A stretch of DNA of 64,000 bases from sequence record MT708547.1; one strand, written 5' to 3'. The notes below the pieces were generated by a model, which saw only the letters and a list, made by a program, of their open reading frames with translations, had not been told where the DNA came from and ran no database searches. Shown piece by piece: positions 869-55,435 of the stretch. A program made the translations under genes and the position numbers. Numbering within the stretch: the stretch's first letter is position 1; every line of letters starts with the position of its first letter.

Positions 869-2056
869 TACACAGTTTGAATCATTTGATATAGAGAGTA
901 TATTAAAACCAACTGATAACTGTACTGTACTTATGAATATGTACTGGATAGTCAAAGATGAAAAAGTCTTTAGATCATTGCGAACTAAAGTATGGCAATG
1001 CAATAAATTTGAGAGTGTAGTTAAACATGTAATCGAATCTTATCCTGGTTGTGAGGTTCGTTTTCTTGAATATGCTTATGTAAAGAAGGATTGATTATGA
1101 AATATTATATGGTAACGGAAGGTGATTCGAGTGGTATTCATTTTTTATGGTCTTATTATGAATTACTTGACTGTTGCACCGTAGAAGATGCAGAAGATTT
1201 ATACAGAGAAGAAAATGGATATTCACTGGATGCACCTTATGGATTGAGAATTTATAGTAAAGAAATTACAGAAAAAGAATATCATGATGGATTGCATTTT
1301 AACGATTATTATGGTGTTAGAACGCTAATTACCGAATTGATGTTTAAAAATAACATTTTCCCACTAAAAAGTTGGGCTTTAATGTTTGCAAATCCAAAAA
1401 AACCTGTTAGAATAGGGTTTCCTGGTTCACATCTAGTCTATCGTATGAATGATAAACGAGAGCTTAGCTACCAGTATGATTATGATTCACATAAGTTTGG
1501 TCTTCTACCAGCATTTAAAGGTTTGACAAATGAGTAAAGATTCATTAGAATTTATTTTACGTTGTGATTGTGGTGAAAAATCAGATCATGTAATTCACAT
1601 TGCACAATACGATCTAGACGAAGAGTACGGTGATAATAAACTTGGCACTTGTTTAATCAGTGCTCGTTTAGAACCATGTAAAACATGGTATGAACGTGTT
1701 TGGATTGGTATCAAATACATCTTTGGTTACAATAGTTATCAGTATATGGATACAATGGTTGATGTTGATATCCTACGTGAAGTAGTACAACAGTTAAAAG
1801 ATGAACGTTCAGAAGAAGACAAAAAAGCTTCTCGTGAAAAACGCTCAGAGGTTAAGGTTCTATGAGTGTGTTATTTGAAAAGAAATATTGTACTAAATGC
1901 TTGACAGCTTATACAATTCAGGGTATGATTTGTTGCTCAAACTGTCAAAGCACAGATGCTCAAACGTTTTTGGTTGATGATCGTTACACCGATTTAATTC
2001 AATTCAAAGCGAATCGAAATTTAAAACATTTTAGTGCTTTACACGACAAAGATTGA
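855..2056 (+). CDS. four overlapping hypothetical ORFs (855-1094, 1091-1537, 1530-1865, 1862-2056); the last is a CxxC...CxxC zinc ribbon
   Basis: Head-to-tail tiling with stop/start overlaps; YCTKC...CSNC in the last ORF. Confidence 0.7.
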
Positions 2057-2066
2057 ATGCTATAAT
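2038..2066 (+). promoter_or_regulatory. sigma70-like early promoter
   Basis: TTTACA-17-TATAAT upstream of AGGA and the ATG at 2102. Confidence 0.65.
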
Positions 2067-2101
2067 CATCTTAACTTAAACAAAAACAGGAATTACTTTA
2101 T

Positions 2102-2593
2102 ATGACTAACGTTAATACCAATCTAGTAACTGATATCAAAAAAGTTATTACTTCTCATCATTTCTTTGCACCAGAAAAACAACGAGTCATCTCTGATATC
2201 AAAGAAGATGAACTTAGTATTATTATTCGTTTTAAAGAACCTGGTGATGAAATTTCATCACAGTTCACTGTACTTCGTGGTAAATTCCGCGAAGAAGGCG
2301 TTGACAAGATCCCAGCTTACATTCTTTTTATTACACTTGGTAGTGTAATTAAGCTGGAAATTGATGAAAATCTGGAGCGTTCATATAAATTTATGCTTGC
2401 ACCAGTTACAGATGATGATAACGTTGAACTGGATTTCAAGAATGATTTCACTGAAGAAGAATTCTTTCAGCAAAGTACAATCCATGATTTCCGTTCAGTA
2501 ACTTATGAACACGTCGAACTTATCAAAGATATGATTGAACCAGTTACCAGTTACGAGAAATATCTCGATGGTCAAGCTGAAGGCAACGAATAA
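2102..2593 (+). CDS. hypothetical protein, FQxS-motif paralog family
   Basis: C-terminal FTEEEFFQQSTIHDF. Confidence 0.8.
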   Translation: MTNVNTNLVTDIKKVITSHHFFAPEKQRVISDIKEDELSIIIRFKEPGDEISSQFTVLRGKFREEGVDKIPAYILFITLGSVIKLEIDENLERSYKFMLAPVTDDDNVELDFKNDFTEEEFFQQSTIHDFRSVTYEHVELIKDMIEPVTSYEKYLDGQAEGNE

Positions 2594-2598
2594 AAATA

Positions 2599-2624
2599 AA
2601 TAACCCACTTCGGTGGGTTATTTT
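2599..2624 (+). terminator. intrinsic terminator
   Basis: AATAACCCAC-TTCG-GTGGGTTATT followed by T residues, right after the stop codon. Confidence 0.85.
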
Positions 2625-2643
2625 CTATATAAGGATATAAATT

Positions 2644-3201
2644 ATGTTAAAAGAAATTCAAAAATTAACAAATTCAATTGTAGATTTTCTTAAAGATAAA
2701 AATGGTTTTAGTACTGAAGTATCAAAACAGGGTGTTCAGTTAATCGTTAAAAGTCCTAATGGTACTGAAACTTTGTATGATGTTTATGAATTGCTTTTAT
2801 ATAAACTTAGTGCTAATAAACTAGGTGGTGATATTCAGTTAAACATTAATGATAGTACTGAGGGTAAGATTTTTGCAATTAACACGAATGTAAATTTTGA
2901 TATACATTCTAAAATCCTCGAAATTAATAATTCATTTGATGATTTCAAACACGACACCATTCGTGGTGTTTTTGTTAGTACTCAATTATCTGAAAGTACA
3001 AATCCGTTTTCGGTACTAACTATGTATAAAAATGGTACATGGGTTCGTTACGATTTAACACTGTCGGAATTACTGTACGCTTGTGTAAATGGGTATAAAT
3101 TACAATTGAACGATTCAGGTTTTGTATACAATGAATTACGTGAATTGTGCGAAAATGTAAAAAAAGAAATGAAGCAAGAAGAAAATACAATATCCAAATA
3201 A
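2644..3201 (+). CDS. hypothetical protein
   Basis: 185-aa ORF with AAGGA ribosome-binding site. Confidence 0.7.
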   Translation: MLKEIQKLTNSIVDFLKDKNGFSTEVSKQGVQLIVKSPNGTETLYDVYELLLYKLSANKLGGDIQLNINDSTEGKIFAINTNVNFDIHSKILEINNSFDDFKHDTIRGVFVSTQLSESTNPFSVLTMYKNGTWVRYDLTLSELLYACVNGYKLQLNDSGFVYNELRELCENVKKEMKQEENTISK

Positions 3202-3217
3202 TGAGGTAGATCTCTGT

Positions 3218-3640
3218 ATGACATTACATGAAGTACTGAATAGTTTCTTTGAATTGAATATTTCAGAAATGAAAACCAAACAAAATAGACACCAACATAG
3301 TGTTTGGTATGATGCCCAACCACAACCGTTTTTAATCAATTTTAAAGAAACAGAAACATACACAATAATGAGATTTCATCATTTTGATGGTGAAAATAAT
3401 TACAGGGTATCATATGATGCAGGAACTGATCGACTGATTTACACAGTAATGGGTACCATTTCATCAACCATTACGATTGGAAACTTCTCTTCTTATAAAT
3501 CAGAAGATAATTTTTTTCAGGATTCACTGATTAATGATTACAATGATTTATCATTCGAAGATATTGACAAAATGATGAATATGTTCTATAATGTAAAAAA
3601 TACAAGTTTATCCCTATTTGGTGAAGATGATGAAATTTGA
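3218..3640 (+). CDS. hypothetical protein, FQxS family
   Basis: SEDNFFQDSLINDY. Confidence 0.75.
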   Translation: MTLHEVLNSFFELNISEMKTKQNRHQHSVWYDAQPQPFLINFKETETYTIMRFHHFDGENNYRVSYDAGTDRLIYTVMGTISSTITIGNFSSYKSEDNFFQDSLINDYNDLSFEDIDKMMNMFYNVKNTSLSLFGEDDEI

Positions 3641-4067
3641 TTTAGAAAAATTTCTGGATTTGGATTTAGATTCATTTTATATCAGAAAGTTTATTTTTAA
3701 ACCACACACAAATGTGGTTGATTATGCTGTGATTGAACTACATGAATCGGATTATACAATTTGGTACGATGTTGATGATTGTATTCAACTAAAGGAATGT
3801 GATGAATGTAAAGGTTATGTTCTGTTGTATGACCTCAATACAAATGAAATTACATTAAAAACTTCACATTATGATGAATACGGTATTATAACAAGACGTG
3901 AATGTGTTGCATTTTCACATGATGATTACACAGAAGAATCATTTTTTATGATTAGTACCTTACATGATGTTGGGGAATTTACATTTGAAACTTTCGATAA
4001 ATTTAATAAAATTTTGAAAAAGATTAAATCAATGATCAAGGAAATTGAAAATGAACAGTCCAAGTAA
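3630..4067 (+). CDS. hypothetical protein, FQxS family
   Basis: YTEESFFMISTLHDV. Confidence 0.75.
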   Translation: MKFDLEKFLDLDLDSFYIRKFIFKPHTNVVDYAVIELHESDYTIWYDVDDCIQLKECDECKGYVLLYDLNTNEITLKTSHYDEYGIITRRECVAFSHDDYTEESFFMISTLHDVGEFTFETFDKFNKILKKIKSMIKEIENEQSK

Positions 4068-4464
4068 ATGTTATATTGTTATTCGTAATGATTTGGATAT
4101 GCCAGAAGGTAAATTTGGTGCACAAATCGGTCATGGCATCGACGCAGTATGGAAAGAGGTTTTGGTAGCCGGTACAATGGTGCGTGCTGCAAATATAGCC
4201 AATGAACAACCAAAAGAGCGTGATATCAAAATACAGGATGAAATTTCTAAATGGGTGAGTGACGGTAGTAGAAAGATTATTCTAAAAACAAAATCAGAAG
4301 ACGAATTACTGAAAATTTATAAAAAGGTATTGTCTGAAGGTTGTATTTGTACTAAAATTTATGATTATGGATTTAATTTTTTTGATGGTTTAACTTTAAC
4401 TGGTATTGTTGTACATCCATGTTCAGAAGAAATTAAAACATTAAAACGAGTACGCTTATGGTAA
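4051..4464 (+). CDS. pth2: peptidyl-tRNA hydrolase, Pth2 type
   Basis: KCYIVIRNDLDMPEGKFGAQIGH (family pattern K.V.VVR.DL.M..GK.AAQ..H), W...GSRKIILK, and IYDYG (I.DAG). Confidence 0.85.
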   Translation: MNSPSKCYIVIRNDLDMPEGKFGAQIGHGIDAVWKEVLVAGTMVRAANIANEQPKERDIKIQDEISKWVSDGSRKIILKTKSEDELLKIYKKVLSEGCICTKIYDYGFNFFDGLTLTGIVVHPCSEEIKTLKRVRLW

Positions 4465-4832
4465 ATGAACATTTAAAAGAATTATGTTCTTTATGGAAAT
4501 CATCTGATGTAAGATTTGAACCTGTACCCAAAAATAAAGATAACTGGCATAATTCTATTGTTATGGGGTCTGGTGGTTTTTTTCTTTTACCTATGGTACT
4601 AAAAGATAAAAAAATAGGTATTGTTGTTTTATACAATGATCTTATATATTATTTTTTGTACGAAGATGAAATTCAGTACGTACATAATAATATGACACAT
4701 ACATACAAAAGAGATACCACACATGAAGAACTATTCCAACTAAGTACTTTATACGATGAAGTAATTCAGTACGAAAACTTAATAGAAGTTTTTAACTTAT
4801 ATGATTCCGTAATGGAGGTAATTGAAAGATGA
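4458..4832 (+). CDS. hypothetical protein, FQxS family
   Basis: TTHEELFQLSTLYDE. Confidence 0.75.
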   Translation: MVNEHLKELCSLWKSSDVRFEPVPKNKDNWHNSIVMGSGGFFLLPMVLKDKKIGIVVLYNDLIYYFLYEDEIQYVHNNMTHTYKRDTTHEELFQLSTLYDEVIQYENLIEVFNLYDSVMEVIER

Positions 4833-5170
4833 TGAGTCATTGTAAATTCTGGCTTCCTGTTATGGTTGTTCTGTTTATTATTTTTACAGTAGTAAACTAT
4901 AAAATCCACAATTCTATCCCAAGACAGCCTACAGCAGAAGAATTAGCTATTCATCAAAATAGTGGTTTATATGCTGAAGTACTCAATAAAATCAAAAACA
5001 AATGTACTGGTATCAGTGATAATGAAAAGAATACATTTTATACATGTGAAGATGGTTCTAAAGTATCAGTGATTTACTGGAAACGTCAAGAAAGAACTGG
5101 GTATGTCACTCGTGATTTTGATAAGGATGGTAAATTAATTTCAATTTATGGACACCCAGATGATATCTAA
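4829..5170 (+). CDS. hypothetical membrane-anchored protein
   Basis: N-terminal hydrophobic segment FWLPVMVVLFIIFTVV. Confidence 0.7.
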   Translation: MMSHCKFWLPVMVVLFIIFTVVNYKIHNSIPRQPTAEELAIHQNSGLYAEVLNKIKNKCTGISDNEKNTFYTCEDGSKVSVIYWKRQERTGYVTRDFDKDGKLISIYGHPDDI

Positions 5171-5612
5171 AGAACAACATAAATTTTTATTCAAAATATT
5201 GAATTCTTATAAAGTTAATAAGTTCAGTACTAAACACGTTCACAATCCAAAAATTATTATTATCACAAGGCGATATATAGGAAATAACAGATTTGAAATA
5301 CACTTATATAAAGGAACTATTTCATTAGAAATTCAAAGATATGGTATTATTTTATTATTAATTGAGTATAATCCAATTTCTGACAATATGACATTATTAT
5401 TCAATGATAATGAACATTGTTCTGAAATCGTTTATCGTATAAACGATGTGTCGGAAATTCTTGAAGAAGATGGTTATTTTCAACAAAGTCTTGTACAAAA
5501 TCTTCCATTGGAATATAATGATTTTTGTAAAATGATGGATGATATCACAACCATCAAAAATTCAATGCTGGAACGTTTTGAGTTAACAGAGCAAGTGTGC
5601 GACAATGACTAA
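5160..5612 (+). CDS. hypothetical protein, FQxS family
   Basis: EEDGYFQQSLVQNL. Confidence 0.7.
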   Translation: MISKEQHKFLFKILNSYKVNKFSTKHVHNPKIIIITRRYIGNNRFEIHLYKGTISLEIQRYGIILLLIEYNPISDNMTLLFNDNEHCSEIVYRINDVSEILEEDGYFQQSLVQNLPLEYNDFCKMMDDITTIKNSMLERFELTEQVCDND

Positions 5613-6475
5613 AGTAGTTAGAAAGCGTAGAGTACTGGATAATGATGAATTCAAATCATTAGAGATTCATCGTCAATTGTTTCACCGTCTTTGTGCTGGT
5701 GAGAAACAAATTGTAGTTACTGAAACATATGAAGAACCAGAAAATATTTTCGGTAACTATTTCCCTGTATTCAATTTGTATATTAAACGCGGTCTATTGG
5801 AAGTAATTACAATAGATCAGTTACCGGAAGATGAACATGAATTTACTGTTATCAAATAAAGAACCATTAGATCGTGATGATGATTTTTATGATGAACGTT
5901 ATGGTGAATCGGAGGAATAAATGGGATTAGATATCTATAAATGTAAAATTAGTTCTACTAAACAAGAACATGGTTTTATTACATGTTCACAAGAAGAGAT
6001 TGATTCAAATAAATCAATTAAAGAACTATTCCAGAAATATAAAAATTATATCAATATCGGCACTGAAGAATACATTGATATTGAACAAAGTTTAATCAAA
6101 TTTAATCTTTCTGATGAATGGTTTTTATCTGGATATGAGTTCAATGAAGATGAGGATTCATATTATGCAGTATTTGATTGTACTCTACCATTGTTCGATT
6201 CCGTAAAAGTATTATATAATGAACTCATCACAAAAGATGAAAAAGTTTATACATTATATTACACAGAAATTGGCTATCAACGTAGAGATTATAAACCCGG
6301 AATCTATGCTGATCTTTGGGGATGTGACCATGAAGAACACGACGGATATTACAGCTTAAATGTTGTAACAGATAATTCAGTACTTGAACTTGTTAAAATG
6401 TATGCGAATGAAAATTCTCCACTTAGTCAATGGGTACTAAACGATAATGATGAATTTATTATCTTCGATTATTGA
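5605..6475 (+). CDS. hypothetical ORFs 5605-5859 and 5921-6475, plus a possible 29-aa acidic ORF at 5831-5920
   Basis: Tiling ORFs; GGAGG before the ATG at 5921. Confidence 0.65.
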
Positions 6476-6511
6476 GATTTCTAAATAAAATAAAACATAA
6501 CAAGGATGTTT

Positions 6512-7399
6512 ATGAAACCTATTACAGTACTGTCATTATTCAATGGGATGAGTGTTGGGTATATGGCACTAAAGAATGCTGGAATTCCAGTACAGAAATA
6601 TTACTCATCAGAAATTGATAAATTTGCTATTGCTGAATCACAAGCCAACTACCCTGATATTATTCAGTTAGGTGATATAACTAAATGGGAAGATTGGGAT
6701 ATCGACTGGGGTAGTATTGACCTACTTATTGGTGGAAGTCCTTGTACTGATGTAAGTTTTGCGGGAAAACAAGAGGGGTTAGTGAAACCAGATGAAAACG
6801 GTGATGGTGGAACACGAAGTGGTTTATTTTATATAATGATTGACATATTCAATCATATTAAATCGATAAATCCAGATTTAAATTTTTTATTTGAAAATGT
6901 CAAGATGAAAAAAGAACATCTTGAAGAATTTAATAATAATATAGGGGTTGATCCTGTTCTAATCAATTCTGAATTATATACTGCTCATTACAGACAGAGA
7001 TATTACTGGATTAGCTCAAATAAGCTAATTCTCAATCCCACCTACGAAGCCCCCGTACTTCAAGATATTATTGTTAATGCATATACTGACAGGAATAAAT
7101 CATATTGCATTGATGCCAATTACTGGAAAAAGGGGAACATTAAACAGTACTTACACAAATCAAGAAGACAGATTGTTTATCTAAGAGACGATCATGATTT
7201 ATTCAGTACTGAAGAAAAAATTAACACATTTAAACTTAATGTTGATTATCGACATTTAACAGTAGATGAAGTATGTTTATTACAGGGTGTACCTGTTGGA
7301 TTTTTTAAAGTAAGTAGTACAACACAAGCATACAAAATGCTAGGTAATGGATGGACATGTCCAGTTATTGAACATCTATTAAAGGAAATTTTCTTTTAA
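6512..7399 (+). CDS. dcm: DNA (cytosine-5) methyltransferase, orphan
   Basis: Motif I LSLFNG, EID, motif IV GGSPC, motif VI FENV, motif VIII RQRYYW, motif X YKMLGNGW; AAGGA 5 nt before the ATG at 6512. Confidence 0.92.
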   Translation: MKPITVLSLFNGMSVGYMALKNAGIPVQKYYSSEIDKFAIAESQANYPDIIQLGDITKWEDWDIDWGSIDLLIGGSPCTDVSFAGKQEGLVKPDENGDGGTRSGLFYIMIDIFNHIKSINPDLNFLFENVKMKKEHLEEFNNNIGVDPVLINSELYTAHYRQRYYWISSNKLILNPTYEAPVLQDIIVNAYTDRNKSYCIDANYWKKGNIKQYLHKSRRQIVYLRDDHDLFSTEEKINTFKLNVDYRHLTVDEVCLLQGVPVGFFKVSSTTQAYKMLGNGWTCPVIEHLLKEIFF

Positions 7400-16987: not shown

Positions 16988-17083
16988 GTGGGTGTGGCGG
17001 TATTGGTTGTACGCAAAGGTCTTAAAAACCTTCAGAGGGCTTAAAATGCATTCCTCTTGTGAGTTCGAATCTCATCACCCGTA
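16988..17083 (+). tRNA. trnL: tRNA-Leu(TAA)
   Basis: Acceptor GTGGGTG/CACCCGT; anticodon stem AAGGT/ACCTT with loop CTTAAAA; 26-nt variable arm; T arm GTGAG-TTCGAAT-CTCAT; A73; no encoded CCA. Confidence 0.9.
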
Positions 17084-17112
17084 CTCATTAAATAGTCAAT
17101 GGATTGACACAA

Positions 17113-17931
17113 ATGGCAAGAAAAGATATATTAGAACAAAAAGAATTAATATTAGATTTAATTTCCAAGAATACCGCAAAATCAACAATATGTAAGATTT
17201 TAAATTGTAAATCATCAACGTTAGATACGTATTTGAAAAAGATGGGTATTATATATAAAGGAAATCAATCTGGTAAAGGAACAAAGAAAGGAACACATTC
17301 AAAATATGTAGAAGCTTCACATTTTCTTAATAAAAATTCATCAATATCATCTAATCAATTAAAACTAAAATTATTGAGAGAAGGATATTTTGAACATAAA
17401 TGTTCAAAATGTGAATTGACAGAATGGATGGGTAAACGAATACCAATTGAATTGGAACACATAGATGGTGATAATACAAATAACGAATTATCAAATCTAT
17501 GTATGTTATGCCCAAATTGTCACGCACAAACCGATACATATAAAGGAAAAAATAAAAAATCAGTTCGTGAAAAGAAACATATACAAGAAATTTTAAATTT
17601 TGAAAATTCTTTTGAACGTTCAGAAATAAAAGATAAAGTTGGGAAGAAAATTAGAATTTCCAAAATTAAAAAATGTGAAGAATGTGGTAATGAATATAAA
17701 GGTAAAAATAAAAAATATTGTTCACGTGTTTGTATGCATTTATCACAAAAAAAATTTCTTTTGACATACGAAGAACTTAAAGAAATAATTTGGAAATATC
17801 CAAGAACAAAAATAGGAGAAATGTATGGTGTTTCTGATAATACTGTCTTGAAACGTTGTAAACTTCTTGATATAGAAGTTCCACCATTGGGATATTTCAT
17901 AAGTTCAAAATATAAAGATAATAATCAATAA
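17113..17931 (+). CDS. HNH homing endonuclease with Zn-finger and HTH domains
   Basis: KCSKC...IELEHIDGDNTNNELSNLCMLCPNCHAQT; C-terminal CEECG...YCSRVC and IGEMYGVSDNTV helix-turn-helix. Confidence 0.9.
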   Translation: MARKDILEQKELILDLISKNTAKSTICKILNCKSSTLDTYLKKMGIIYKGNQSGKGTKKGTHSKYVEASHFLNKNSSISSNQLKLKLLREGYFEHKCSKCELTEWMGKRIPIELEHIDGDNTNNELSNLCMLCPNCHAQTDTYKGKNKKSVREKKHIQEILNFENSFERSEIKDKVGKKIRISKIKKCEECGNEYKGKNKKYCSRVCMHLSQKKFLLTYEELKEIIWKYPRTKIGEMYGVSDNTVLKRCKLLDIEVPPLGYFISSKYKDNNQ

Positions 17932-17947
17932 TAAATATAATAACAAA

Positions 17948-18023
<76 letters not shown>

Positions 18024-18028
18024 AATTC

Positions 18029-18124
18029 AACAGGTAGTAACGCTCTTAGGTGTACATTAATATAGGAATAAGGGTTAACAGTACTGTACACAAACGAGTA
18101 ACCCCGAAAGACCCGAAACCTGTT
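18029..18124 (+). ncRNA. candidate pseudoknotted RNA downstream of tRNA-Gly
   Basis: AACAGGT/ACCTGTT and GTGTACA/TGTACAC stems; loop GGGTTA complementary to downstream TAACCC. Confidence 0.4.
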
Positions 18125-18134
18125 AAAGTTTTAC

Positions 18135-18184
18135 GGATGATTATAAATCTGAATTGACAGAAACAGCTAAAACTGTTATTATCC
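18135..18184 (+). ncRNA. 50-nt three-way-junction element, copy 1
   Basis: GGATGAT/ATTATCC, TCTG/CAGA, AACA/TGTT. Confidence 0.7.
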
Positions 18185-18395
18185 TATTTTATTCCACAAT
18201 CAGACGTATATGGTGTAAGTTACGTCGATGAAATCCAGAACAAGATCTCTGGTACTCTAGGAAGTGGTGAATGTTAACCTAGACGGGTTTGTTAATTGGA
18301 CGATAAGCAATTAATACTTGACTAGCAGGTTTAAACTAGAGGTGACTGTCCTTCACTAAACTGGAAAACCGGATGGATTTTTAATTAAAAAAGTG

Positions 18396-18424
18396 TTGAA
18401 CAAAATGTTCAATAATGATATAAT
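18396..18424 (+). promoter_or_regulatory. sigma70-like promoter with inverted repeat
   Basis: TTGAAC-aaaat-GTTCAA, 17-bp spacer, TGaTATAAT. Confidence 0.75.
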
Positions 18425-18515
18425 AATTATCAATGTAAGGCGTGGAACAATGTTTACATAAGTTACTTAGTAGCCTGTACGCCCCACGTCAAGGTAGCCG
18501 AAAGGCAAGTTTAAT

Positions 18516-18565
18516 GGGTGGTTATAAATCTGAATTGACAGAGACTATTAAAACAGTCACCATCC
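18516..18565 (+). ncRNA. 50-nt three-way-junction element, copy 2
   Basis: GGGTGGT/ACCATCC, TCTG/CAGA, GACT/AGTC. Confidence 0.7.
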
Positions 18566-18751
18566 AAATTTTAATTTAATAGTTTAGTATGAATAAAAAA
18601 CAAATACATAAACAATATGATGAAATTGCAGTGAAGGTTTTTCGTGGTGAATTAGGTTATAAACCATCTGTTAAATCTAAATATTCAAAATCTTCTTCAC
18701 TAAAATTCAATCATAAAATAGAGTTTAAATAGTACTGGACAATAATATATA

Positions 18752-19201
18752 ATGAATATCACTAATGTAAAAGATTTTTTAGAATATTTTATTAAGAATA
18801 CTCGTGCACGTGATGAATTAGAAAAGAATGGATTCATCCAAGGTTACGATTGCACTAATTTCTTTTATACTATTGATAAACATGAATATTATGTCGATGC
18901 AATTTTAATTGATGATGATGGGTATTGCGTTGGATTTTCGTTCGAAGATATATCACAAGATGCACCAATAAACTTTTATGCATTATATTATAATAAAAAA
19001 GATAATATTTTGAAATTAGGATTTACCAGTGACACGGATGAAGATGTTGTATTCAATTGTAACACATGGTTGGAACATGATTCATTCTTTCAAAGTACAT
19101 TAATTCATAACTTTATGACAACAGATTTAGAGTACTGGAAAACTTGTATAGAATTACTTAATGTAATTTATAATGAACAAGTCAAACAAAAATGGCAATA
19201 A
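18752..19201 (+). CDS. hypothetical protein, FQxS family (a 47-aa ORF at 18589-18732 precedes it)
   Basis: WLEHDSFFQSTLIHNFMTTDLEYWKTCI. Confidence 0.8.
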   Translation: MNITNVKDFLEYFIKNTRARDELEKNGFIQGYDCTNFFYTIDKHEYYVDAILIDDDGYCVGFSFEDISQDAPINFYALYYNKKDNILKLGFTSDTDEDVVFNCNTWLEHDSFFQSTLIHNFMTTDLEYWKTCIELLNVIYNEQVKQKWQ

Positions 19202-19266
19202 TCACAGAACGGTTCAGCATTTGGTAGTATGTTTGACTGAATAAAGCATAAACGTTTAAAAAAGTG

Positions 19267-19294
19267 TTGAACAAAAAGTTCAGTACTGTATAAT
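19267..19294 (+). promoter_or_regulatory. promoter for tRNA-Arg
   Basis: TTGAAC-aaaaa-GTTCAGTACTG-TATAAT. Confidence 0.7.
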
Positions 19295-19305
19295 TGACTT
19301 ACTAC

Positions 19306-19379
19306 GTCCCCTTAGTTCAGTTGGATAGAACAACTGCCTTCTAAGCAGTAGGTCACTGGTTCGAGTCCAGTAGGGGATA
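19306..19379 (+). tRNA. trnR: tRNA-Arg(TCT)
   Basis: GTCCCCT/AGGGGAT; D arm GTTC/GAAC; ACTGC-CTTCTAA-GCAGT; ACTGG-TTCGAGT-CCAGT. Confidence 0.92.
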
Positions 19380-19435
19380 TACCATACAATATGGGAATAG
19401 TTAGAAGATATTCCCAATTTTAATTTAAAAAAGTG

Positions 19436-19464
19436 TTGAACAAAAAGTTCAATAATGATATAAT
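19436..19464 (+). promoter_or_regulatory. promoter upstream of tRNA-Ser(GCT)
   Basis: TTGAAC-aaaaa-GTTCAA, 17-bp spacer, TGaTATAAT. Confidence 0.75.
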
Positions 19465-19529
19465 GGTATTATAAAAGATTGTAATACATAATATTAACTT
19501 TTAAGAACATAATTAAGTTATCATACACA

Positions 19530-19621
<92 letters not shown>

Positions 19622-19640
19622 TAAAATTCAATTAAAAAAT

Positions 19641-19771
<131 letters not shown>

Positions 19772-19779
19772 GATTTCAT

Positions 19780-19829
19780 GGATAGTTATAAAGTTGAATT
19801 AACAGCGACACTTAAAATTGTCACTATCC
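19780..19829 (+). ncRNA. 50-nt three-way-junction element, copy 3
   Basis: GGATAGT/ACTATCC, GTTG/CAGC, GACA/TGTC; starts 8 nt after the tRNA-Ser CCA. Confidence 0.7.
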
Positions 19830-19888
19830 AAATTTTAATTTAAATAGTACTTGACAAAAATATTCAGTACTGATACATAAAGAATATT

Positions 19889-20199
19889 GGCCCCTTAGCT
19901 CACGCTTTGGTTAGAGCAGACGACTCATCGATAAATGGTGACTTTCACAAGTAATTGTGATTGAAAAACTGGATGAATTCAGGGAAACCTTAACACATAA
20001 TGGTGATGGCAATCCTGAGCCAAGCCCAATAAGCGTATTGGGAAGGTGCAGAGACTAGGTGGTTCAGCACGATCTTGCTGTGTAATACACCAATAGCGTC
20101 CGGCATCCTTATAGGATGATGATATAGTCCTTTCTATAATGAAAATTATAGGTAAAAAGAATCGTTTGGTACTGTGTTCGACTCACAGAGGGGCCACCA
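19889..20199 (+). tRNA. ileX: tRNA-Ile2(CAT), ileX-like, split by a group I intron (exons 19889-19928 and 20160-20199)
   Basis: Spliced sequence GGCCCCT-TA-GCTC...GAGC-A-GACGA-CTCATAA-TCGTT-TGGTA-CTGTG-TTCGACT-CACAG-AGGGGCC-A-CCA, close to enterobacterial ileX (GGCCCCTTAGCTCA...AGGGGCCACCA). Confidence 0.88.
19929..20159 (+). mobile_element. group I self-splicing intron, 231 nt, ORF-less, probably IC3-like
   Basis: P AATTCAGGGAAAC (19976), Q AATCCTGAGC (20011), R GTGCAGAGACT (20046), S GATATAGTCC (20121); P1 exon UCAU pairs with GUGA giving a U-G splice-site pair; P7 GACTA/TAGTC; GNRA loops in P2 and P9; ends in G. Confidence 0.9.
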
Positions 20200-30444: not shown

Positions 30445-31341
30445 ATGAAAGAAGTTGATCTAAATGAACTAAGTGCTGAAATCATGGAAACATTATTTGA
30501 TGAATCTGATATTGAGCAATCAAAAAATATTAAGAGTACAAAAGATAATATCAGTCTCAAACATCCAACTGGTGTTACAAATGAAATGCTGTTAAATGAA
30601 ATACATAATGGTATTAATGTAAAACAAAATCGTGAATTACTTATCCGTTATAATTATCCACTAGCAGTCAGTATTGCTAAACGTTGTAAATGTTATATTC
30701 CAGAAGAAGATAAAATTTCTTATGCAGTAGAGGGTCTTTTGAATTCAATTCATAATTTTGATGTTACAAAAGGTGTATTATTCAGTACTTATGCCAGTGC
30801 TTCCATTTACATGACAGTGATGAACATGAGTAATGAACATAATAATTTAGTTTATATCCCCCGCCATGTAAGTGTACATAATGTTAATATTCGTAAATTT
30901 GCAAATGAATACGAAAAGAAACACGGCAAAAAATGCAAACCTGAACTTATTTCAAAAGAACTCGGAATTAATGTTGATACTGTTGAGTTGTGTTTGTCTT
31001 TCCAGGAAACCACATCTCTTGATACTCCAACTTCTGATGATAGTACTGCACTAATTGATACCATTGCCAGTGATTGTAACGTAGAACAAAATGACGTTGA
31101 TAGTATTGTTCTGGAATTGATGAATGAACTAGAACCAAAAGAAAAGGAAATCCTTTCCAGAATTTATGGTTTGAATGGATATGCACCAGAAACCTATGAT
31201 AGCTTGATTAGTACTGGATTTTATGATAAAAAGGGTAAACGTATTACTGTTCGCGGAACTTTACATTACAAATTCAGTACTGCACTTGAGAAACTAAAGC
31301 GTTTGGTTCGTCTAAAAGGATTAACTGCCAAAGATGTTTAA
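30445..31341 (+). CDS. RNA polymerase sigma factor, sigma70 family
   Basis: Region 2: RELLIRYNYPLAVSIAKR...EGLLNSIHNFDVTKGVLFSTYA; VYIPRH; region 3: SLDTP; region 4: LEPKEKEILSRIYGL. Confidence 0.85.
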   Translation: MKEVDLNELSAEIMETLFDESDIEQSKNIKSTKDNISLKHPTGVTNEMLLNEIHNGINVKQNRELLIRYNYPLAVSIAKRCKCYIPEEDKISYAVEGLLNSIHNFDVTKGVLFSTYASASIYMTVMNMSNEHNNLVYIPRHVSVHNVNIRKFANEYEKKHGKKCKPELISKELGINVDTVELCLSFQETTSLDTPTSDDSTALIDTIASDCNVEQNDVDSIVLELMNELEPKEKEILSRIYGLNGYAPETYDSLISTGFYDKKGKRITVRGTLHYKFSTALEKLKRLVRLKGLTAKDV

Positions 31342-31367
31342 ATTGATATTTTTTCTTTATTAAATAC

Positions 31368-31396
31368 TTGAACAAAATTTTTTACAGTGATATAAT
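31368..31396 (+). promoter_or_regulatory. sigma70-like promoter
   Basis: TTGAAC-17-TATAAT with TGn; no credible + strand ORF for about 700 nt downstream. Confidence 0.75.
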
Positions 31397-31399
31397 GTT

Positions 31400-32050
31400 T
31401 GTAATACATGGATGTTGGACATTCTTTTTGAAAAGAACGTATGGATAAAAACCCGATTAGCCGAAAATGTAACGCTACGGATGAGTATAACCAACATATA
31501 CGAGATGCAGAGGATACCCGAAAGGCGAGACGGCATCTAAAAGGATAGGAAATAGCACTACCTATCCCAAGCTTACATTAGGCTTGATAGATCGCAAATC
31601 TGGTTGAGTCCAGACAAATAAAGAGTGTAAGGGAGATTATTTTCTTTTAGATATTTTGGAAATAATCACAGTATTGAATTGCTTGAATAGTTCGGTACTG
31701 AAGTGCAAGTATGTTTAAACTTGTGACCGTTGCATGTGACTGCGATAAGGGGAAACCGGGCAACCCGCCTCTGCCTAATAAATTAAATTTATTAGAATTC
31801 GCAATTCAAGGAATTTCGACAGCTACGAGCTTCAAGGCTTAGCTTTTTTATTTCTCATCCCCTCCCTGTGGGGGATGAAAATATCTCGTGCAAACGCCTT
31901 CAAGTATTGAAATTCACGAAGTGAATTGAAATTACTTGTTCTGTAGTCAAACGACAGTGAGACGTGAGAACAAGTAATTTCTGCATGTATCAACGAAGTG
32001 ACAACGAGTTGATACATAGCACTTTAAAACATTATTGAATTCAATAATTA
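31400..32050 (+). ncRNA. candidate large structured ncRNA (about 650 nt, possibly two units)
   Basis: Hairpins GATGC/GCATC, GGATAGG/CCTATCC, AAGCTTA/TAGGCTT, TCTGG/CCAGA, GGG-GCAA-CCC, CATCCCC/GGGGATG, TTCAC-GAA-GTGAA, GAAATTACTTGTTCT/AGAACAAGTAATTTC, TGTATCAAC/GTTGATACA. Confidence 0.6.
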
Positions 32051-32092
32051 ATATTATTATGGTTATTGAAGAAATAAAATCGGAGTACTGAA

Positions 32093-34416
32093 ATGAACAC
32101 TATTATTTTTTTGATTATACTGAGTACTGGAACAACTACTACGGTAATTAAAGAAATGCCTTCTTTGGTACAATGTAAAGTAATTATGAATTCCGTTTAT
32201 ACACAACAAAAAGAAAAGCAAAAAGAAACAAGTAAAACGGATTACTATTGTTTGAATTCAACAACCAACACTAAGTACTATCCAGATGAGTGAGTTCACA
32301 TTTCTTTGTACTTTTTATTATTATACTTCTGCTACTTCAAAGAAGTATGTAAAAGAAGAAATAAACGTATATACCAGTTCAGTACAAAAAGCTATTTGCG
32401 AGATACATTTGTACTTAGTTTGTTGTGAAGTAATTGATATAGAATACATACCGTACAGGAATAAATCTAATGACTTTAAGACTAATTACTGAAGTAGATA
32501 AATCAGTAAGTGAATTATCAACTGAAGAATTGAATAAGTTGGACTGGAGTTCAGTCCCAAAATCACAACTTCTTTCTATTTCAGATGATCGTTTGATGAA
32601 ATGTCCCATCGACATTTTAACCCAAAGTTATTCTTGTGATAACTATAGCAATGATTTGTGTTTATATATACTCACTTCTAAAATAAAGAAGTGCAAAGAT
32701 TTTCGAAATGGTTATGCATTATATCATCTATTAAGTAATTTTTTTAATCCAGATTTTATCAAGAATAATAAAAAAGAAATTCTTGAAATGTTAAAACGAC
32801 ATGAAGAGATTCATAGTACTGTTACGTTTCCATCAGTTATTCAATACTTGATGAAACATGGAATCATTTCATTTTTTGATTTAAATATGACATTTGAAAC
32901 AATCAATGACACATGGGATGCCTTGGAATCCGATATTCCACAGGAAGATTGGATTAAATTAATCACACGTACAAATTACCTGTACTCAACACTCACTGAA
33001 CACCATTCAATACAGAATAATGTAATACCATTAAGTACTGAAAACTTATGGAAATGTGGGATTAAAATTAATCCAGTTGTTGATCTGTCGTGGGTTAAAA
33101 ATGGCACATATGAATGTGATGATGATTATGTAGACATTTTACTGGAAGATTTAATAGAACAATTAAATTGTACTTCAATCACATGGGATGAAGTGCTAGA
33201 AAAATTCAATACATATAAACTTGATAGGGACAACAATCCCCCTTATGGTGTTAATTTTATCAGTACTGTATGGGAACATCACATAATTGACACAAAGTTT
33301 GAATTGAACAGAGATGATTTTTTCAAGAAAAATTTACATCTTTACAAAACTATTGGATAAAAAGTCTTGACATGGAGTACTATTTGAGTAATAATACTCC
33401 TATCTTAATTTAATGAGGAAACACTGATGAAAACTCTATTACTTATTGTAGTCGTGGCTTTTGGTGCATGGTGGTTTTCTGAAAATTTCAGTATAACTTC
33501 AAAAAATGAACCACAACCTGTTCCACAAGAAGTACATACAGATTCTATTGGAACTAAGGTTGATAAAATAATTAAAGTAATTACGGAATAAATGTTATGG
33601 GATTAGATGTAACTGAAGCTCAAAGAATATTAGAAAACCTCAGAGAAATTAATTCAAAATTTGAACGTAATAATCTCTGTACTGAATGGGATAAAAAACT
33701 ACCCAATAGATTTAGTGAAATCACTAATGAAATTTTATTCAGTACTGGTTTAGTTTGGATTGAACATACTTCTCTATATAATGTTACGTATCGCCATGAA
33801 GGTTATGTTGTTGAATACAATGAATATCTGGATCAGGGTATGAAAGTACTCAAAATGTGGAGTACTGTTTATAACGAGCTAGTAATTATCTGGATTAATG
33901 ACAGTAATGGTGTTGACTTTGGTGATTTAGAAGAAAACACTACTAAGGTAGCACCGATTTTCGTTGGTTTGTCTGATAATATCATGTAAGTATTAAAAGA
34001 AAGGTTTTGACAATGAATGAAAAATTGGCTTTAATTTGGAAAAGTGGTTATGACTTTAAAGTAACACCAAAGGAACTTAGAGTATTTCGTACTGAATACT
34101 GTGAGTATCTTGATTTAGACCAGTATAATACCATTGTTCGTATTGAACACAATGGTGATGTTGAAGGTCATATCAGTGAAGTACTTGATAAAGCTATTTC
34201 AATTATTGGGGTAAAATGATGATTAGTTTTTATTTGGCAGTGATACTTATTAATGGTAATATCGAAAGAACACTAGGAAATGGGTTTTATAAAACCCCTG
34301 AAGAATGCTATACGACGACAAATTGGCCTCGTGATAGTGAAACTCGTGAAGAATTCAAATGCATCAAGGCTACTGGTGATTTTGTAAATTTCAAAGTTAT
34401 TGAGGTACAAAAATGA
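32093..34416 (+). CDS. hypothetical ORFs 32093-32293, 32286-32492, 32470-33360, 33427-33591 (membrane-anchored, not in the track), 33597-33989, about 34011-34219, 34216-34416
   Basis: Tiling ORFs with ribosome-binding sites. Confidence 0.6.
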
Positions 34417-54142: not shown

Positions 54143-55435
54143 ATTATGATTCGTTATGCTCTGCGTCATAGAACTTCCAAACAGTACGTTGGATTTCGTA
54201 CTGTGCCATGGGAATTTGGTACTGATATTCATTTGGATTTCGATGATGATTATATTTGGTTGAAAGAAGATCGCACATTAATGGATACACTTATTGAAAA
54301 TAGAAAGTCAAATGATGCATCGTTACAATTGAGTGATTCAGTACTGAAGGCGTTAAAAGATTATAAATTAGAAGTGATGGAAATTAATTTCCCAGATACT
54401 GATTGGTGGGATGATTAATGATTGTGAAAATACAATTTTAATTTCATAAACTAAATTATCTAAAGGTGAAATAATGCAATACTCTATCTATGCTCGTATG
54501 GGAGTTGATTATGAATGGAACAGACTTCGTACAGTGTACAATGAAGAGAAAGCAATTGAACTGAAAGAGTATTACGAACAAACATGGCGTATCGTTGAAA
54601 TTCGTAATGAAAGCAAATAAGCGTTGACAACATATATCAGTACTGTATAATATATACAATCTTAATCGAAAAAGGTAAAACAAAAATGAAAGTTACTCTG
54701 ACTGGTGGTACAATCAATGTAGCAACAATCAAATCAGTACTGGAAAACAATAGCCGAGTATATATTTCACTTCCAATTAATGATGTTTGTGAAATTTTAG
54801 TAACTCGTTTGGAATCACATTTTAACGGGTATATCAAACAAGATAGTATTGAAGTTAAATTCGCCGAACGAGATTGTGGTGAAATCCAGTGTATGGCAAC
54901 AGAATACTTTAACATCAATATGATGGAAAAAGCTGCAATGGCTGCCGTTGAGCGATATAATTCAGAAGATCCATGTGAATTTTCTAATTATTCAGTGGCA
55001 TTTGAAAATACATTTATTAAAGAATAACAAAATGAAGTCATACCTTTTCCTATAATATAGTATTACTAAAATAGAGAATATTGTATGAAACTCGATTATG
55101 AATTAATAAGCAAAACGTTTAAATTAATATATTTTATTTTTGGTTATAGTAAAAATTCTAATTTTTTTCCAATATTATTTGACCTTGATGAAAATGATAT
55201 TCACCAAGAATACAATAAAATATTGAATCGAGAGTTACATTTATCAATTAAAGAATTAGTAATTAATAAGTATATTCATTATAAAAATAAAAATTTTGAT
55301 GGATATTTGCAAATTATTGGATATGATTTTGATACATCGAAATTAATAGTAAAGGCACCTAATAATACGGGAATTTTCCAAATAACTTGGGCGAATTTAA
55401 AAATTTTTGACAGTATACCATCAAAAAAAGGTTGA
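54143..55435 (+). CDS. hypothetical ORFs about 54143-54418, 54686-55027, 55085-55435, plus sub-60-aa ORFs near 53810 and 54474
   Basis: Ribosome-binding sites; promoter TTGACA-16-TATAAT at 54624-54651. Confidence 0.6.

Follow-up and report, generated by a model that had tools for sequence, protein, structure and literature searches.

A predicted family of large pseudoknotted RNAs in RaK2-like jumbo phages and in integrase islands of bacterial chromosomes

Introduction

Complex conserved folds of large RNAs are rare, and RNase P, group I and group II introns, GOLLD, ROOL and OLE have each opened new biochemistry. GOLLD and ROOL are large phage-associated RNAs of unknown function (PMC5737381; 10.1101/2024.12.08.627333). 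They measure 500-800 nt, are carried by phages, contain many helices with pseudoknots and have no ORF. The non-coding 6S RNA, about 185 nt long, forms one extended hairpin opened in its centre by a bubble that resembles an open promoter. A catalogue of ~10,000 viral RNA candidates, whose mean length is 67 nt, does not mention an RNA of the kind described here (PMC10690425), and the lncRNAs of phage PA5oct have been defined by RNA-seq (PMC7318152).

Phage T4 uses at least five origins that fire early. At oriF and oriG the RNA made from a promoter persists as an R-loop, from which the leading strand is primed in one direction, and a plasmid bearing either origin is replicated in infected cells (PMC3016281). 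T4 origins require an A+T-rich unwinding element and no specific RNA fold. Virulent phages have minimal satellites, PICMI among them, which carry defence genes and are packaged as concatemers; they are small and possess an integrase and a CI-like repressor (PMC10803314). Structured RNAs located just past early promoters, HK022 put and lambda nut, act in cis and measure ~70 nt. RNA II of ColE1, a promoter-driven folded RNA of ~550 nt, is also cis-acting, and its correct folding decides hybridisation at the origin and priming.

The locus that we compare with these systems lies in the final 64 kb (64,000 nucleotides, hereafter the window) of the record of Klebsiella phage Muenster (MT708547.1, Alcyoneusvirus, 346,937 bp); window positions are obtained by subtracting 282,937 from record positions. 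An earlier note, made from the sequence of the window, had drawn attention to a highly structured, ORF-free region following a sigma gene and had proposed a new large ncRNA. We consider it extremely likely that this region represents a real family of structured RNAs. To judge from the sequences, the family is made of undescribed large (~500-680 nt) pseudoknotted RNA genes, each with its own sigma70-type promoter. One such gene is called RNA unit below.

Architecture of the RNA unit of phage Muenster

The RNA unit is preceded by a sigma-like gene (30445-31341; Pfam Sigma70_r2/r3) and followed by a small gene starting at 32093. A motif scan located on the + strand a -35-like box, TTGAAC (31368-31373), and, at a spacing of 17 nt, an extended -10 element, TG-n-TATAAT (31388-31396). 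With 10 of 12 consensus sigma70 matches in addition to the extended -10 TG, the consensus promoter of the earlier note is borne out as a near-consensus one, and transcription would start near 31403. A T-G-(A/G)-A-A-C box followed after ~15 nt by TGnTATAAT stands ahead of nearly every copy examined, island copies included, with a few -10 variants; the -10 region of the third Muenster copy reads TATGTAATATAAT. The same promoter class was given as 'divergent RpoD-like' in the CBB genome paper (PMC5259590).

The 666 nt from 31395 to 32060 fold on the + strand with -198.5 kcal/mol vs -146.0 +/- 7.8 for dinucleotide shuffles (z = -6.8), and the same stretch folded on the - strand gives z = -5.4. All elements described hereafter are on the + strand. 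The 5' domain (31403-31628), supported by covariation in 52 copies, begins with the long-range helix P1 (31412-18 / 31491-97), drawn around two hairpins (31421-40 and 31457-78) and enclosing an invariant GAUGAG (31480-85). It continues with two covarying helices, P2 (31504-08 / 31533-37) and P3 (31543-49 / 31561-67), then with a hairpin (31569-85), an invariant GAUAG (31586-90) and a last hairpin (31599-31614).

The core domain (31629-31820) starts with an invariant AAGGGAG (31629-35) and comprises the hairpins P5 (31635-67) and P6 (31669-78 / 31691-700), the loop of P6 (31682-88) pairing with 31804-10 in the covarying pseudoknot P11. Helix P7 (31706-10 / 31719-23) is followed by an invariant GACCGU. 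Helix P8 (31729-33 / 31760-64) crosses both P12 (31741-45 / 31799-803) and P9 (31748-52 / 31768-72), forming a second pseudoknot, and hairpin P10 (31775-95) has a 10-bp stem (31775-84 / 31786-95). A terminator-like hairpin (31821-44) with a U run (31844-53) comes next. It is optional in the family, being present in some paralogues and not in others, and the conserved blocks resume 3' of it; it may stop part of the transcripts.

All copies possess the C-run/G-run hairpin P14 (31856-62 / 31871-77), whose G-run is invariant and leads into AUGAAAAU, and a conserved single-stranded block after it (31878-31906). The 3' domain (31907-32050) contains a hairpin (31911-17 / 31921-27) closed by a C-GAA-G loop (31917-21), a composite hairpin with a perfect 15-bp stem (31928-42 / 31967-81), a 10-bp hairpin (31985-94 / 32008-17) whose loop carries the motif ACGAAGUGA, and an AT-rich palindrome (32031-48). 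Hairpins such as the earlier note had described are present, among them the perfect 15-bp stem, two 10-bp stems and the C-GAA-G loop, and the claim of a highly structured region agrees both with the departure from shuffled sequences and with the recurrence of the unit, with compensatory changes, in every related phage.

The description of the region as ORF-free stands in the sense that no ORF is conserved, and has to be qualified in that GenBank annotates a 43-aa hypothetical CDS within the unit (CPT_Muenster_491, 31711-31842, + strand). Its ATG falls in the P7 loop, which is missing in 33 of the 52 family members, and its frame is not kept, the open length at the homologous place ranging from 0 to 68 codons across copies. 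Because of this start codon and this unkept frame, the CDS is very likely spurious as far as sequence comparison can tell. The longest + strand ORF of each copy has 24 to 75 codons, at a position never common to the copies, and a protein-coding reading of the unit was rejected for want of a conserved open frame. CPT_Muenster_135 (record positions 54469-54600), also within a copy of the unit, is probably a mis-call too. Similar small CDSs are annotated over the unit in several related phage records, and such 'hypothetical proteins' are probably spurious and call for a correction of the annotation.

Conservation of the fold

A blind search for stacked column pairs in an alignment of 52 sequences recovered nine helices (P1, P2, P3, P4, P8, P9, P11, P12 and P14), with 88-100% standard pairing and up to six pair types per position. 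Stacks with at least eight extra pair types numbered seven in the antiparallel register and none in the parallel-register control. In P1, P2 and P3, 88-100% of the pairs are standard and each position has 2-6 pair types; in P11 and P12, 100% are standard, with 2-3 pair types at nearly every position. A covariance model, R1, was restricted to a core of 109 nt, and 59 copies were aligned to it. Its pairs are formed in 96.2% of cases vs 76.3% in shuffles, none of 500 shuffles reaching 96.2%, and sliding the partners lowers pairing to 39-56%. Both sides have changed in 15 of the 17 pairs, and P8 and P9 are each 100% paired in the 59 copies. The variable hairpins (the two inside P1, P5, the P6 stem, P7 and P10) were judged by eye with partial counts.

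The strand that carries the fold can be read from the wobble pairs: one P9 position has 30-32 G.U pairs, and the varying 5' strand of P14 forms U.G wobbles against its fixed G-run, so that the fold lies on the + strand. Two pseudoknots follow from the crossing of P9 and P12 by P8 and from the pairing of the P6 loop with a distant strand in P11. Together with the absence of any Rfam match, covariation across 59 copies on the + strand strongly supports the earlier proposal of a new large ncRNA. Two further candidate features were rejected. RNAalifold suggested that GAUAG pairs at long range with the loop of P13, a small hairpin just before the terminator-like one, but this pairing fails in Muenster and partly in 121Q; two repeated CGUCAG-like blocks varying in concert proved to be an alignment artefact for Muenster.

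Unpaired junction motifs are invariant (GAUGAG, GAUAG, AAGGGAG, GACCGU, ACCCGC and the G-run with AUGAAAAU). A module of ~33 nt, made of an AAAUUUG / CAAAUUU stem and a conserved 17-nt loop with the palindromes GUAC and GAUC, is carried by 36 of the 52 members. In 20 copies it caps P5 and in 17 it caps P10, a single one of the 52 having it at both places, and the window copy lacks it. From its sequence, the module could be a tertiary receptor or make a kissing-loop contact; a peripheral element that changes place between adjacent helices is typical of RNAs under selection for their three-dimensional shape.

The 3' domain, the last 150 nt, has one architecture in all copies. C-GAA-G (22 cases) and C-GUA-G (8 cases) are the commonest apical loops predicted there; CGAAG was observed 44 times vs 5.9 expected in 8 kb of 3' domains, and C-GNA-G loops are 7-fold enriched. 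The sequence C-GNA-G is a recipe for unusually stable DNA mini-hairpins. The C-GAA-G mini-hairpin is a trait of the family, and the 3' third belongs to the RNA unit. This third could act as RNA or as displaced + strand DNA, and the alternative raised in the earlier note, an ncRNA combined with a DNA hairpin element such as an origin, may hold. The RNA strand of this domain is purine-rich (0.55-0.58) with positive GC skew.

Comparison with known RNA classes

Rfam 15 was searched with the whole window at gathering score, with 31200-32200 at E<=10 and with six other copies at gathering score, and no family matched the unit. As a positive control, a group I intron and five tRNAs were detected by the same search in other parts of the window; the tRNA matches belong to a cluster at 16988-20151, and the intron is complete (19903-20151, 104 bits). 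The cmscan that the earlier note had proposed leaves the window copy outside every family even at E<=10, the only entry listed, mt-tmRNA, scoring 18 bits vs a cut-off of 65, which is chance level. A full-text search of the literature found no description of this RNA.

No covariance-model match to GOLLD or ROOL (RF01998 and RF03087) was obtained, either in 31200-32200 at E<=10 or in the six other copies at gathering score. The unit resembles them in its size range, its many helices with pseudoknots, its carriage by phages and its lack of an ORF; it differs in its enterobacterial jumbo-phage hosts, its 3-5 diverged and evenly spaced copies, its conserved promoter and its copies in integrase islands. 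Like 6S RNA (RF00013) it is non-coding, and the window copy adjoins a sigma-factor gene, but there is no 6S match at E<=10, and the unit is multi-branched, contains two pseudoknots and reaches at least 500 nt. The other copies do not lie near sigma genes and have unrelated neighbours, and a special tie to the sigma gene, or a 6S-like action, was rejected for that reason. No group I intron (RF00028) occurs at the unit, which has its own promoter and interrupts no gene. ARAGORN detected no tRNA or tmRNA gene in 31200-32200, and RNase P RNA gave no Rfam match at E<=10. The strings AUGACUG and ACAGAG..CCCGCUU of the unit, which we take to resemble RNase P strings by eye, had no support from any model; the same applies to hammerhead-like strings that were also seen by eye.

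Copies in jumbo phages

With the copy of Pectobacterium phage CBB as query, blastn found 72 phage records with one to five matching places each, from phages of Escherichia, Klebsiella, Salmonella, Erwinia, Yersinia, Serratia, Cronobacter, Pectobacterium and Xanthomonas. A full-length unit was recovered by nhmmer at all 41 places fetched. Full matches to R1 number exactly five in each of seven complete RaK2-like genomes, three in RaK2 and three in Muenster.

The second Muenster copy (record positions 54,156-54,837) is 88% identical to the window copy. When these two (copies A/B: 54156-54837 of the record and 31389-32078 of the window) are compared, the -10 box is common to both, the 5' 200 nt are only ~65% identical with islands of identity, and the 3' 450 nt are 100% identical up to ~32078 except for a GG indel in a loop. 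This distribution of identity indicates recent gene conversion between A and B, with a sharp boundary near 31627. The same pattern is seen in RaK2. The third Muenster copy (~129,100-129,700 of the record) is more diverged and longer, with a core of ~600 nt, and has an orthologue in RaK2.

In the five-copy genomes the gaps between copies measure 44-86 kb. If the copies were placed at random on a circle, their smallest gap would be this large with a probability of 0.0003-0.02 per genome; because of the synteny of the genomes these tests are not independent. The three copies of Alcyoneusvirus are unevenly spaced. In a tree the copies group by genome position across genomes and genera, which makes them old paralogues and positional orthologues. 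All copies within one genome are co-oriented, most of them among same-strand genes. The paralogue class called '174k' has opposite-strand genes on both sides, and a strong bidirectional terminator closes it ~150 nt past CGUCAG, a conserved block close to the 3' end of the core. This paralogue would be a stand-alone RNA of ~680 nt, which argues against a mere leader; copy 4 of 121Q is likewise located between minus-strand genes. The mean G+C content is 0.38-0.47 in the unit vs 0.33 in its flanks and 0.30-0.36 in the 3' domain, where no clear A+T-rich trough is seen. A GC-skew switch was looked for at the unit and none was found.

Copies in bacterial islands

A pattern scan of one genome per species yielded four chromosomes, those of Serratia fonticola, Serratia sp. 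2723, Silvania hatchlandensis and an Enterobacteriaceae MAG, each with one full-length copy, which scores ~80 bits with R1 and covers nhmmer positions 7-512. Among the neighbouring genes are those of large serine recombinases and of CI-like HTH/S24 repressors and two ParB/RepB-like genes. In Serratia sp. 2723 (1269-4762 of the examined stretch) a Hachiman pair, HamA and a DEAD/ResIII helicase, lies near the copy; in the Enterobacteriaceae MAG (2125-6593 of the examined stretch) an nSTAND3 NTPase, a small resolvase and a tyrosine integrase are present. Two tandem rof genes of 87 aa (Pfam ROF) adjoin the copy of Serratia fonticola (4775-5490 of the examined stretch), and this pair may be a duplication left by integration.

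The unit was also detected in two of 5,426 complete E. coli genomes. In strain LR-29-1 it occupies a 1.4-kb ORF-free gap of a ~10.8-kb island adjoining ffs and shares 81% identity with the stand-alone paralogue that Serratia phage BF carries. Island copies are rare (1 of 151 sampled Enterobacterales, that one being the query centre itself), and none of 72,556 plasmids matched the unit.

The promoter is kept in the island copies, and every helix is maintained by compensatory pairs of their own. Some islands are just a few kb long, and neither a primase nor a Rep gene was recognised in them. Their integrases are unrelated in type, serine or tyrosine, and the unit and the gene beside it often converge. 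The unit entered islands at least twice, and chromosomal islands with defence genes have captured it independently. The islands resemble PICMI and other minimal satellites in their small size, integrase, CI-like repressor and defence cargo, and differ from PICMI in that no primase or Rep gene was recognised, their common element being the RNA unit (PMC10803314).

Possible functions

Our tentative preference goes to the RNA unit as a cis-acting origin transcript that satellites have copied. The unit would work in cis as a replication-start module: its RNA would be synthesised early by the host RNA polymerase, the folded 5' and core domains would hold or recruit a phage factor, and the 3' part would remain hybridised to the template as an R-loop, with the displaced + strand locked into stable C-GNA-G mini-hairpins. 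Five co-directional forks would then each copy ~70 kb. Satellite-like integrase islands, some with defence genes, would carry one copy and thereby be amplified by an infecting phage.

The way in which the copies are spaced and oriented along the genome suggests a positional role, and an origin-like cis role fits the even spacing of the copies as well as their capture by islands. A role in cis is supported by the gaps of 44-86 kb, by positional orthologues across genera and by the co-orientation of all copies, which holds even for the paralogue surrounded by opposite-strand genes. The islands argue the same way, since each has one full copy with the fold kept and no replication gene was recognised. 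The purine-rich 3' domain, its positive GC skew and the 7-fold enrichment of C-GNA-G support an origin weakly. Other features weaken it: the unit is richer in G+C than its flanks with no clear unwinding element downstream, the GC skew does not change at the element, and Alcyoneusvirus has three unevenly spaced copies. The three-dimensional look of the fold, the invariant junctions and the swappable module exceed what a primer needs and are rather those of a ribozyme or an RNP RNA. Islands might just as well use the RNA as a decoy or a sensor.

Among described origins, T4 oriF and oriG share with the unit a sigma70-type -10 promoter, which in the unit is predicted to drive a non-coding transcript as it does at T4-type origins, several sites per genome and the capacity to be borrowed by other DNA, which in T4 is that of plasmids; they are ~100 bp long and without common sequence, whereas the unit has ~650 nt under strong selection for RNA structure. 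ColE1 RNA II is similar as a promoter-driven folded RNA of comparable length, but the two are not related in sequence and no antisense RNA I partner was seen for the unit. To our knowledge, RNA II has no pseudoknotted core and is present as one copy per replicon. A bolder form of the origin proposal, which we regard as rather unlikely, would make a large RNA with ribozyme-grade tertiary structure the origin-defining element itself. Such a new class of origin would rely on an RNA made in cis at five sites, evenly spaced and all in one orientation, along a phage genome of 350 kb and would be pirated by minimal satellite or defence islands, for which the RNA unit and an integrase would suffice to be amplified by the jumbo phage.

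A trans-acting 'ornate' RNA in the manner of GOLLD, ROOL or OLE, with a compact three-dimensional body and perhaps multimeric or part of an RNP, is a doubtful but serious competitor, nearly as likely as a cis origin. It would serve as scaffold, cage, cofactor or anti-defence decoy, its several copies giving dosage or hetero-assemblies, and an island with a version of its own would thereby hijack or jam the phage factor binding this RNA. The two pseudoknots, the invariant junctions and the P5/P10 swap, all indicative of selection on three-dimensional shape, speak for it, as do the discrete paralogue set among opposite-strand genes, with its strong terminator ~150 nt past the CGUCAG block, and the precedent of GOLLD and ROOL, which are also large and phage-associated (PMC5737381; 10.1101/2024.12.08.627333). 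Yet a trans-acting RNA leaves even spacing, fixed orientation and positional orthology unexplained, satellites normally copy cis sites and not trans factors already supplied by their helper, and no known large RNA in Rfam 15 is similar to the unit in sequence or model.

The unit could also be a cis-acting transcription element: as a put-like processive antiterminator or a leader, it would act on the very RNA polymerase that transcribes it and let this enzyme read through terminators in long blocks of co-oriented genes. Its place directly after a strong promoter, the same-strand genes downstream of most copies, the internal terminator-like hairpin past which the conserved RNA continues in some copies, and a spacing of about one per 70 kb among mostly co-oriented genes would suit such a role, and put and nut are likewise structured cis-acting RNAs just past early promoters. 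We nevertheless hold it to be improbable. The '174k' class, between opposite-strand genes and closed by a strong bidirectional terminator, leads nothing and is not positioned upstream of terminators to be overridden; copy 4 of 121Q stands between minus-strand genes, and island units are often convergent with the neighbouring gene. With ~650 nt vs ~70 nt, the unit also has about ten times the length of the known put RNA. Slightly less probable still, in our estimation, is an element acting as DNA, be it a site of recombination or attachment, one related to packaging, or a MITE-like mobile repeat, with an incidental RNA fold. Multiple copies, the vicinity of integrases in islands, the long perfect inverted repeats of the 3' third and the identical 450-nt 3' part of Muenster copies A/B, a sign of recent gene conversion, could be so understood. 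A DNA site, however, has no need of pairing kept through G.U on the + strand only, or of long-range and pseudoknotted helices; the copies are ancient positional orthologues and not recent insertions, no terminal repeats or target duplications were seen, and the island integrases belong to unrelated types.

The RNA unit is experimentally accessible, being present in cultured jumbo phages of E. coli, Klebsiella, Salmonella, Serratia and Erwinia, and the natural series of three to five paralogues per genome makes its function testable. If it marks replication starts, as we tentatively propose, it would identify the origins of RaK2-like jumbo phages together with a new route of exploitation by satellites; if it acts in trans, it would provide a new ornate RNA in a tractable host.

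Distant and environmental sequences

The core model R1 did not match the genome of Pseudomonas phage PA5oct. With nhmmer, a weak match (E 0.012) was obtained between the P14 C/G hairpin block and the 3' end of PA5oct ncRNA004. This 619-nt RNA (1117-1735 of the examined stretch) ends in a C-run/G-run hairpin and a similar tail; on sequence grounds it may be a very distant relative, or the match may be due to chance.

Among public sequencing runs, the only ones with the sequence were wastewater libraries labelled RNA-Seq and kept as contigs. These contigs span in fragments the whole 5.9-kb neighbourhood, the stretch by which the runs had been selected. RaK2-like phage sequence at 95-100% identity occurs in wastewater libraries of at least five studies, and one variant contig (31586-31821) carries 14 substitutions and 7 indels in the core.
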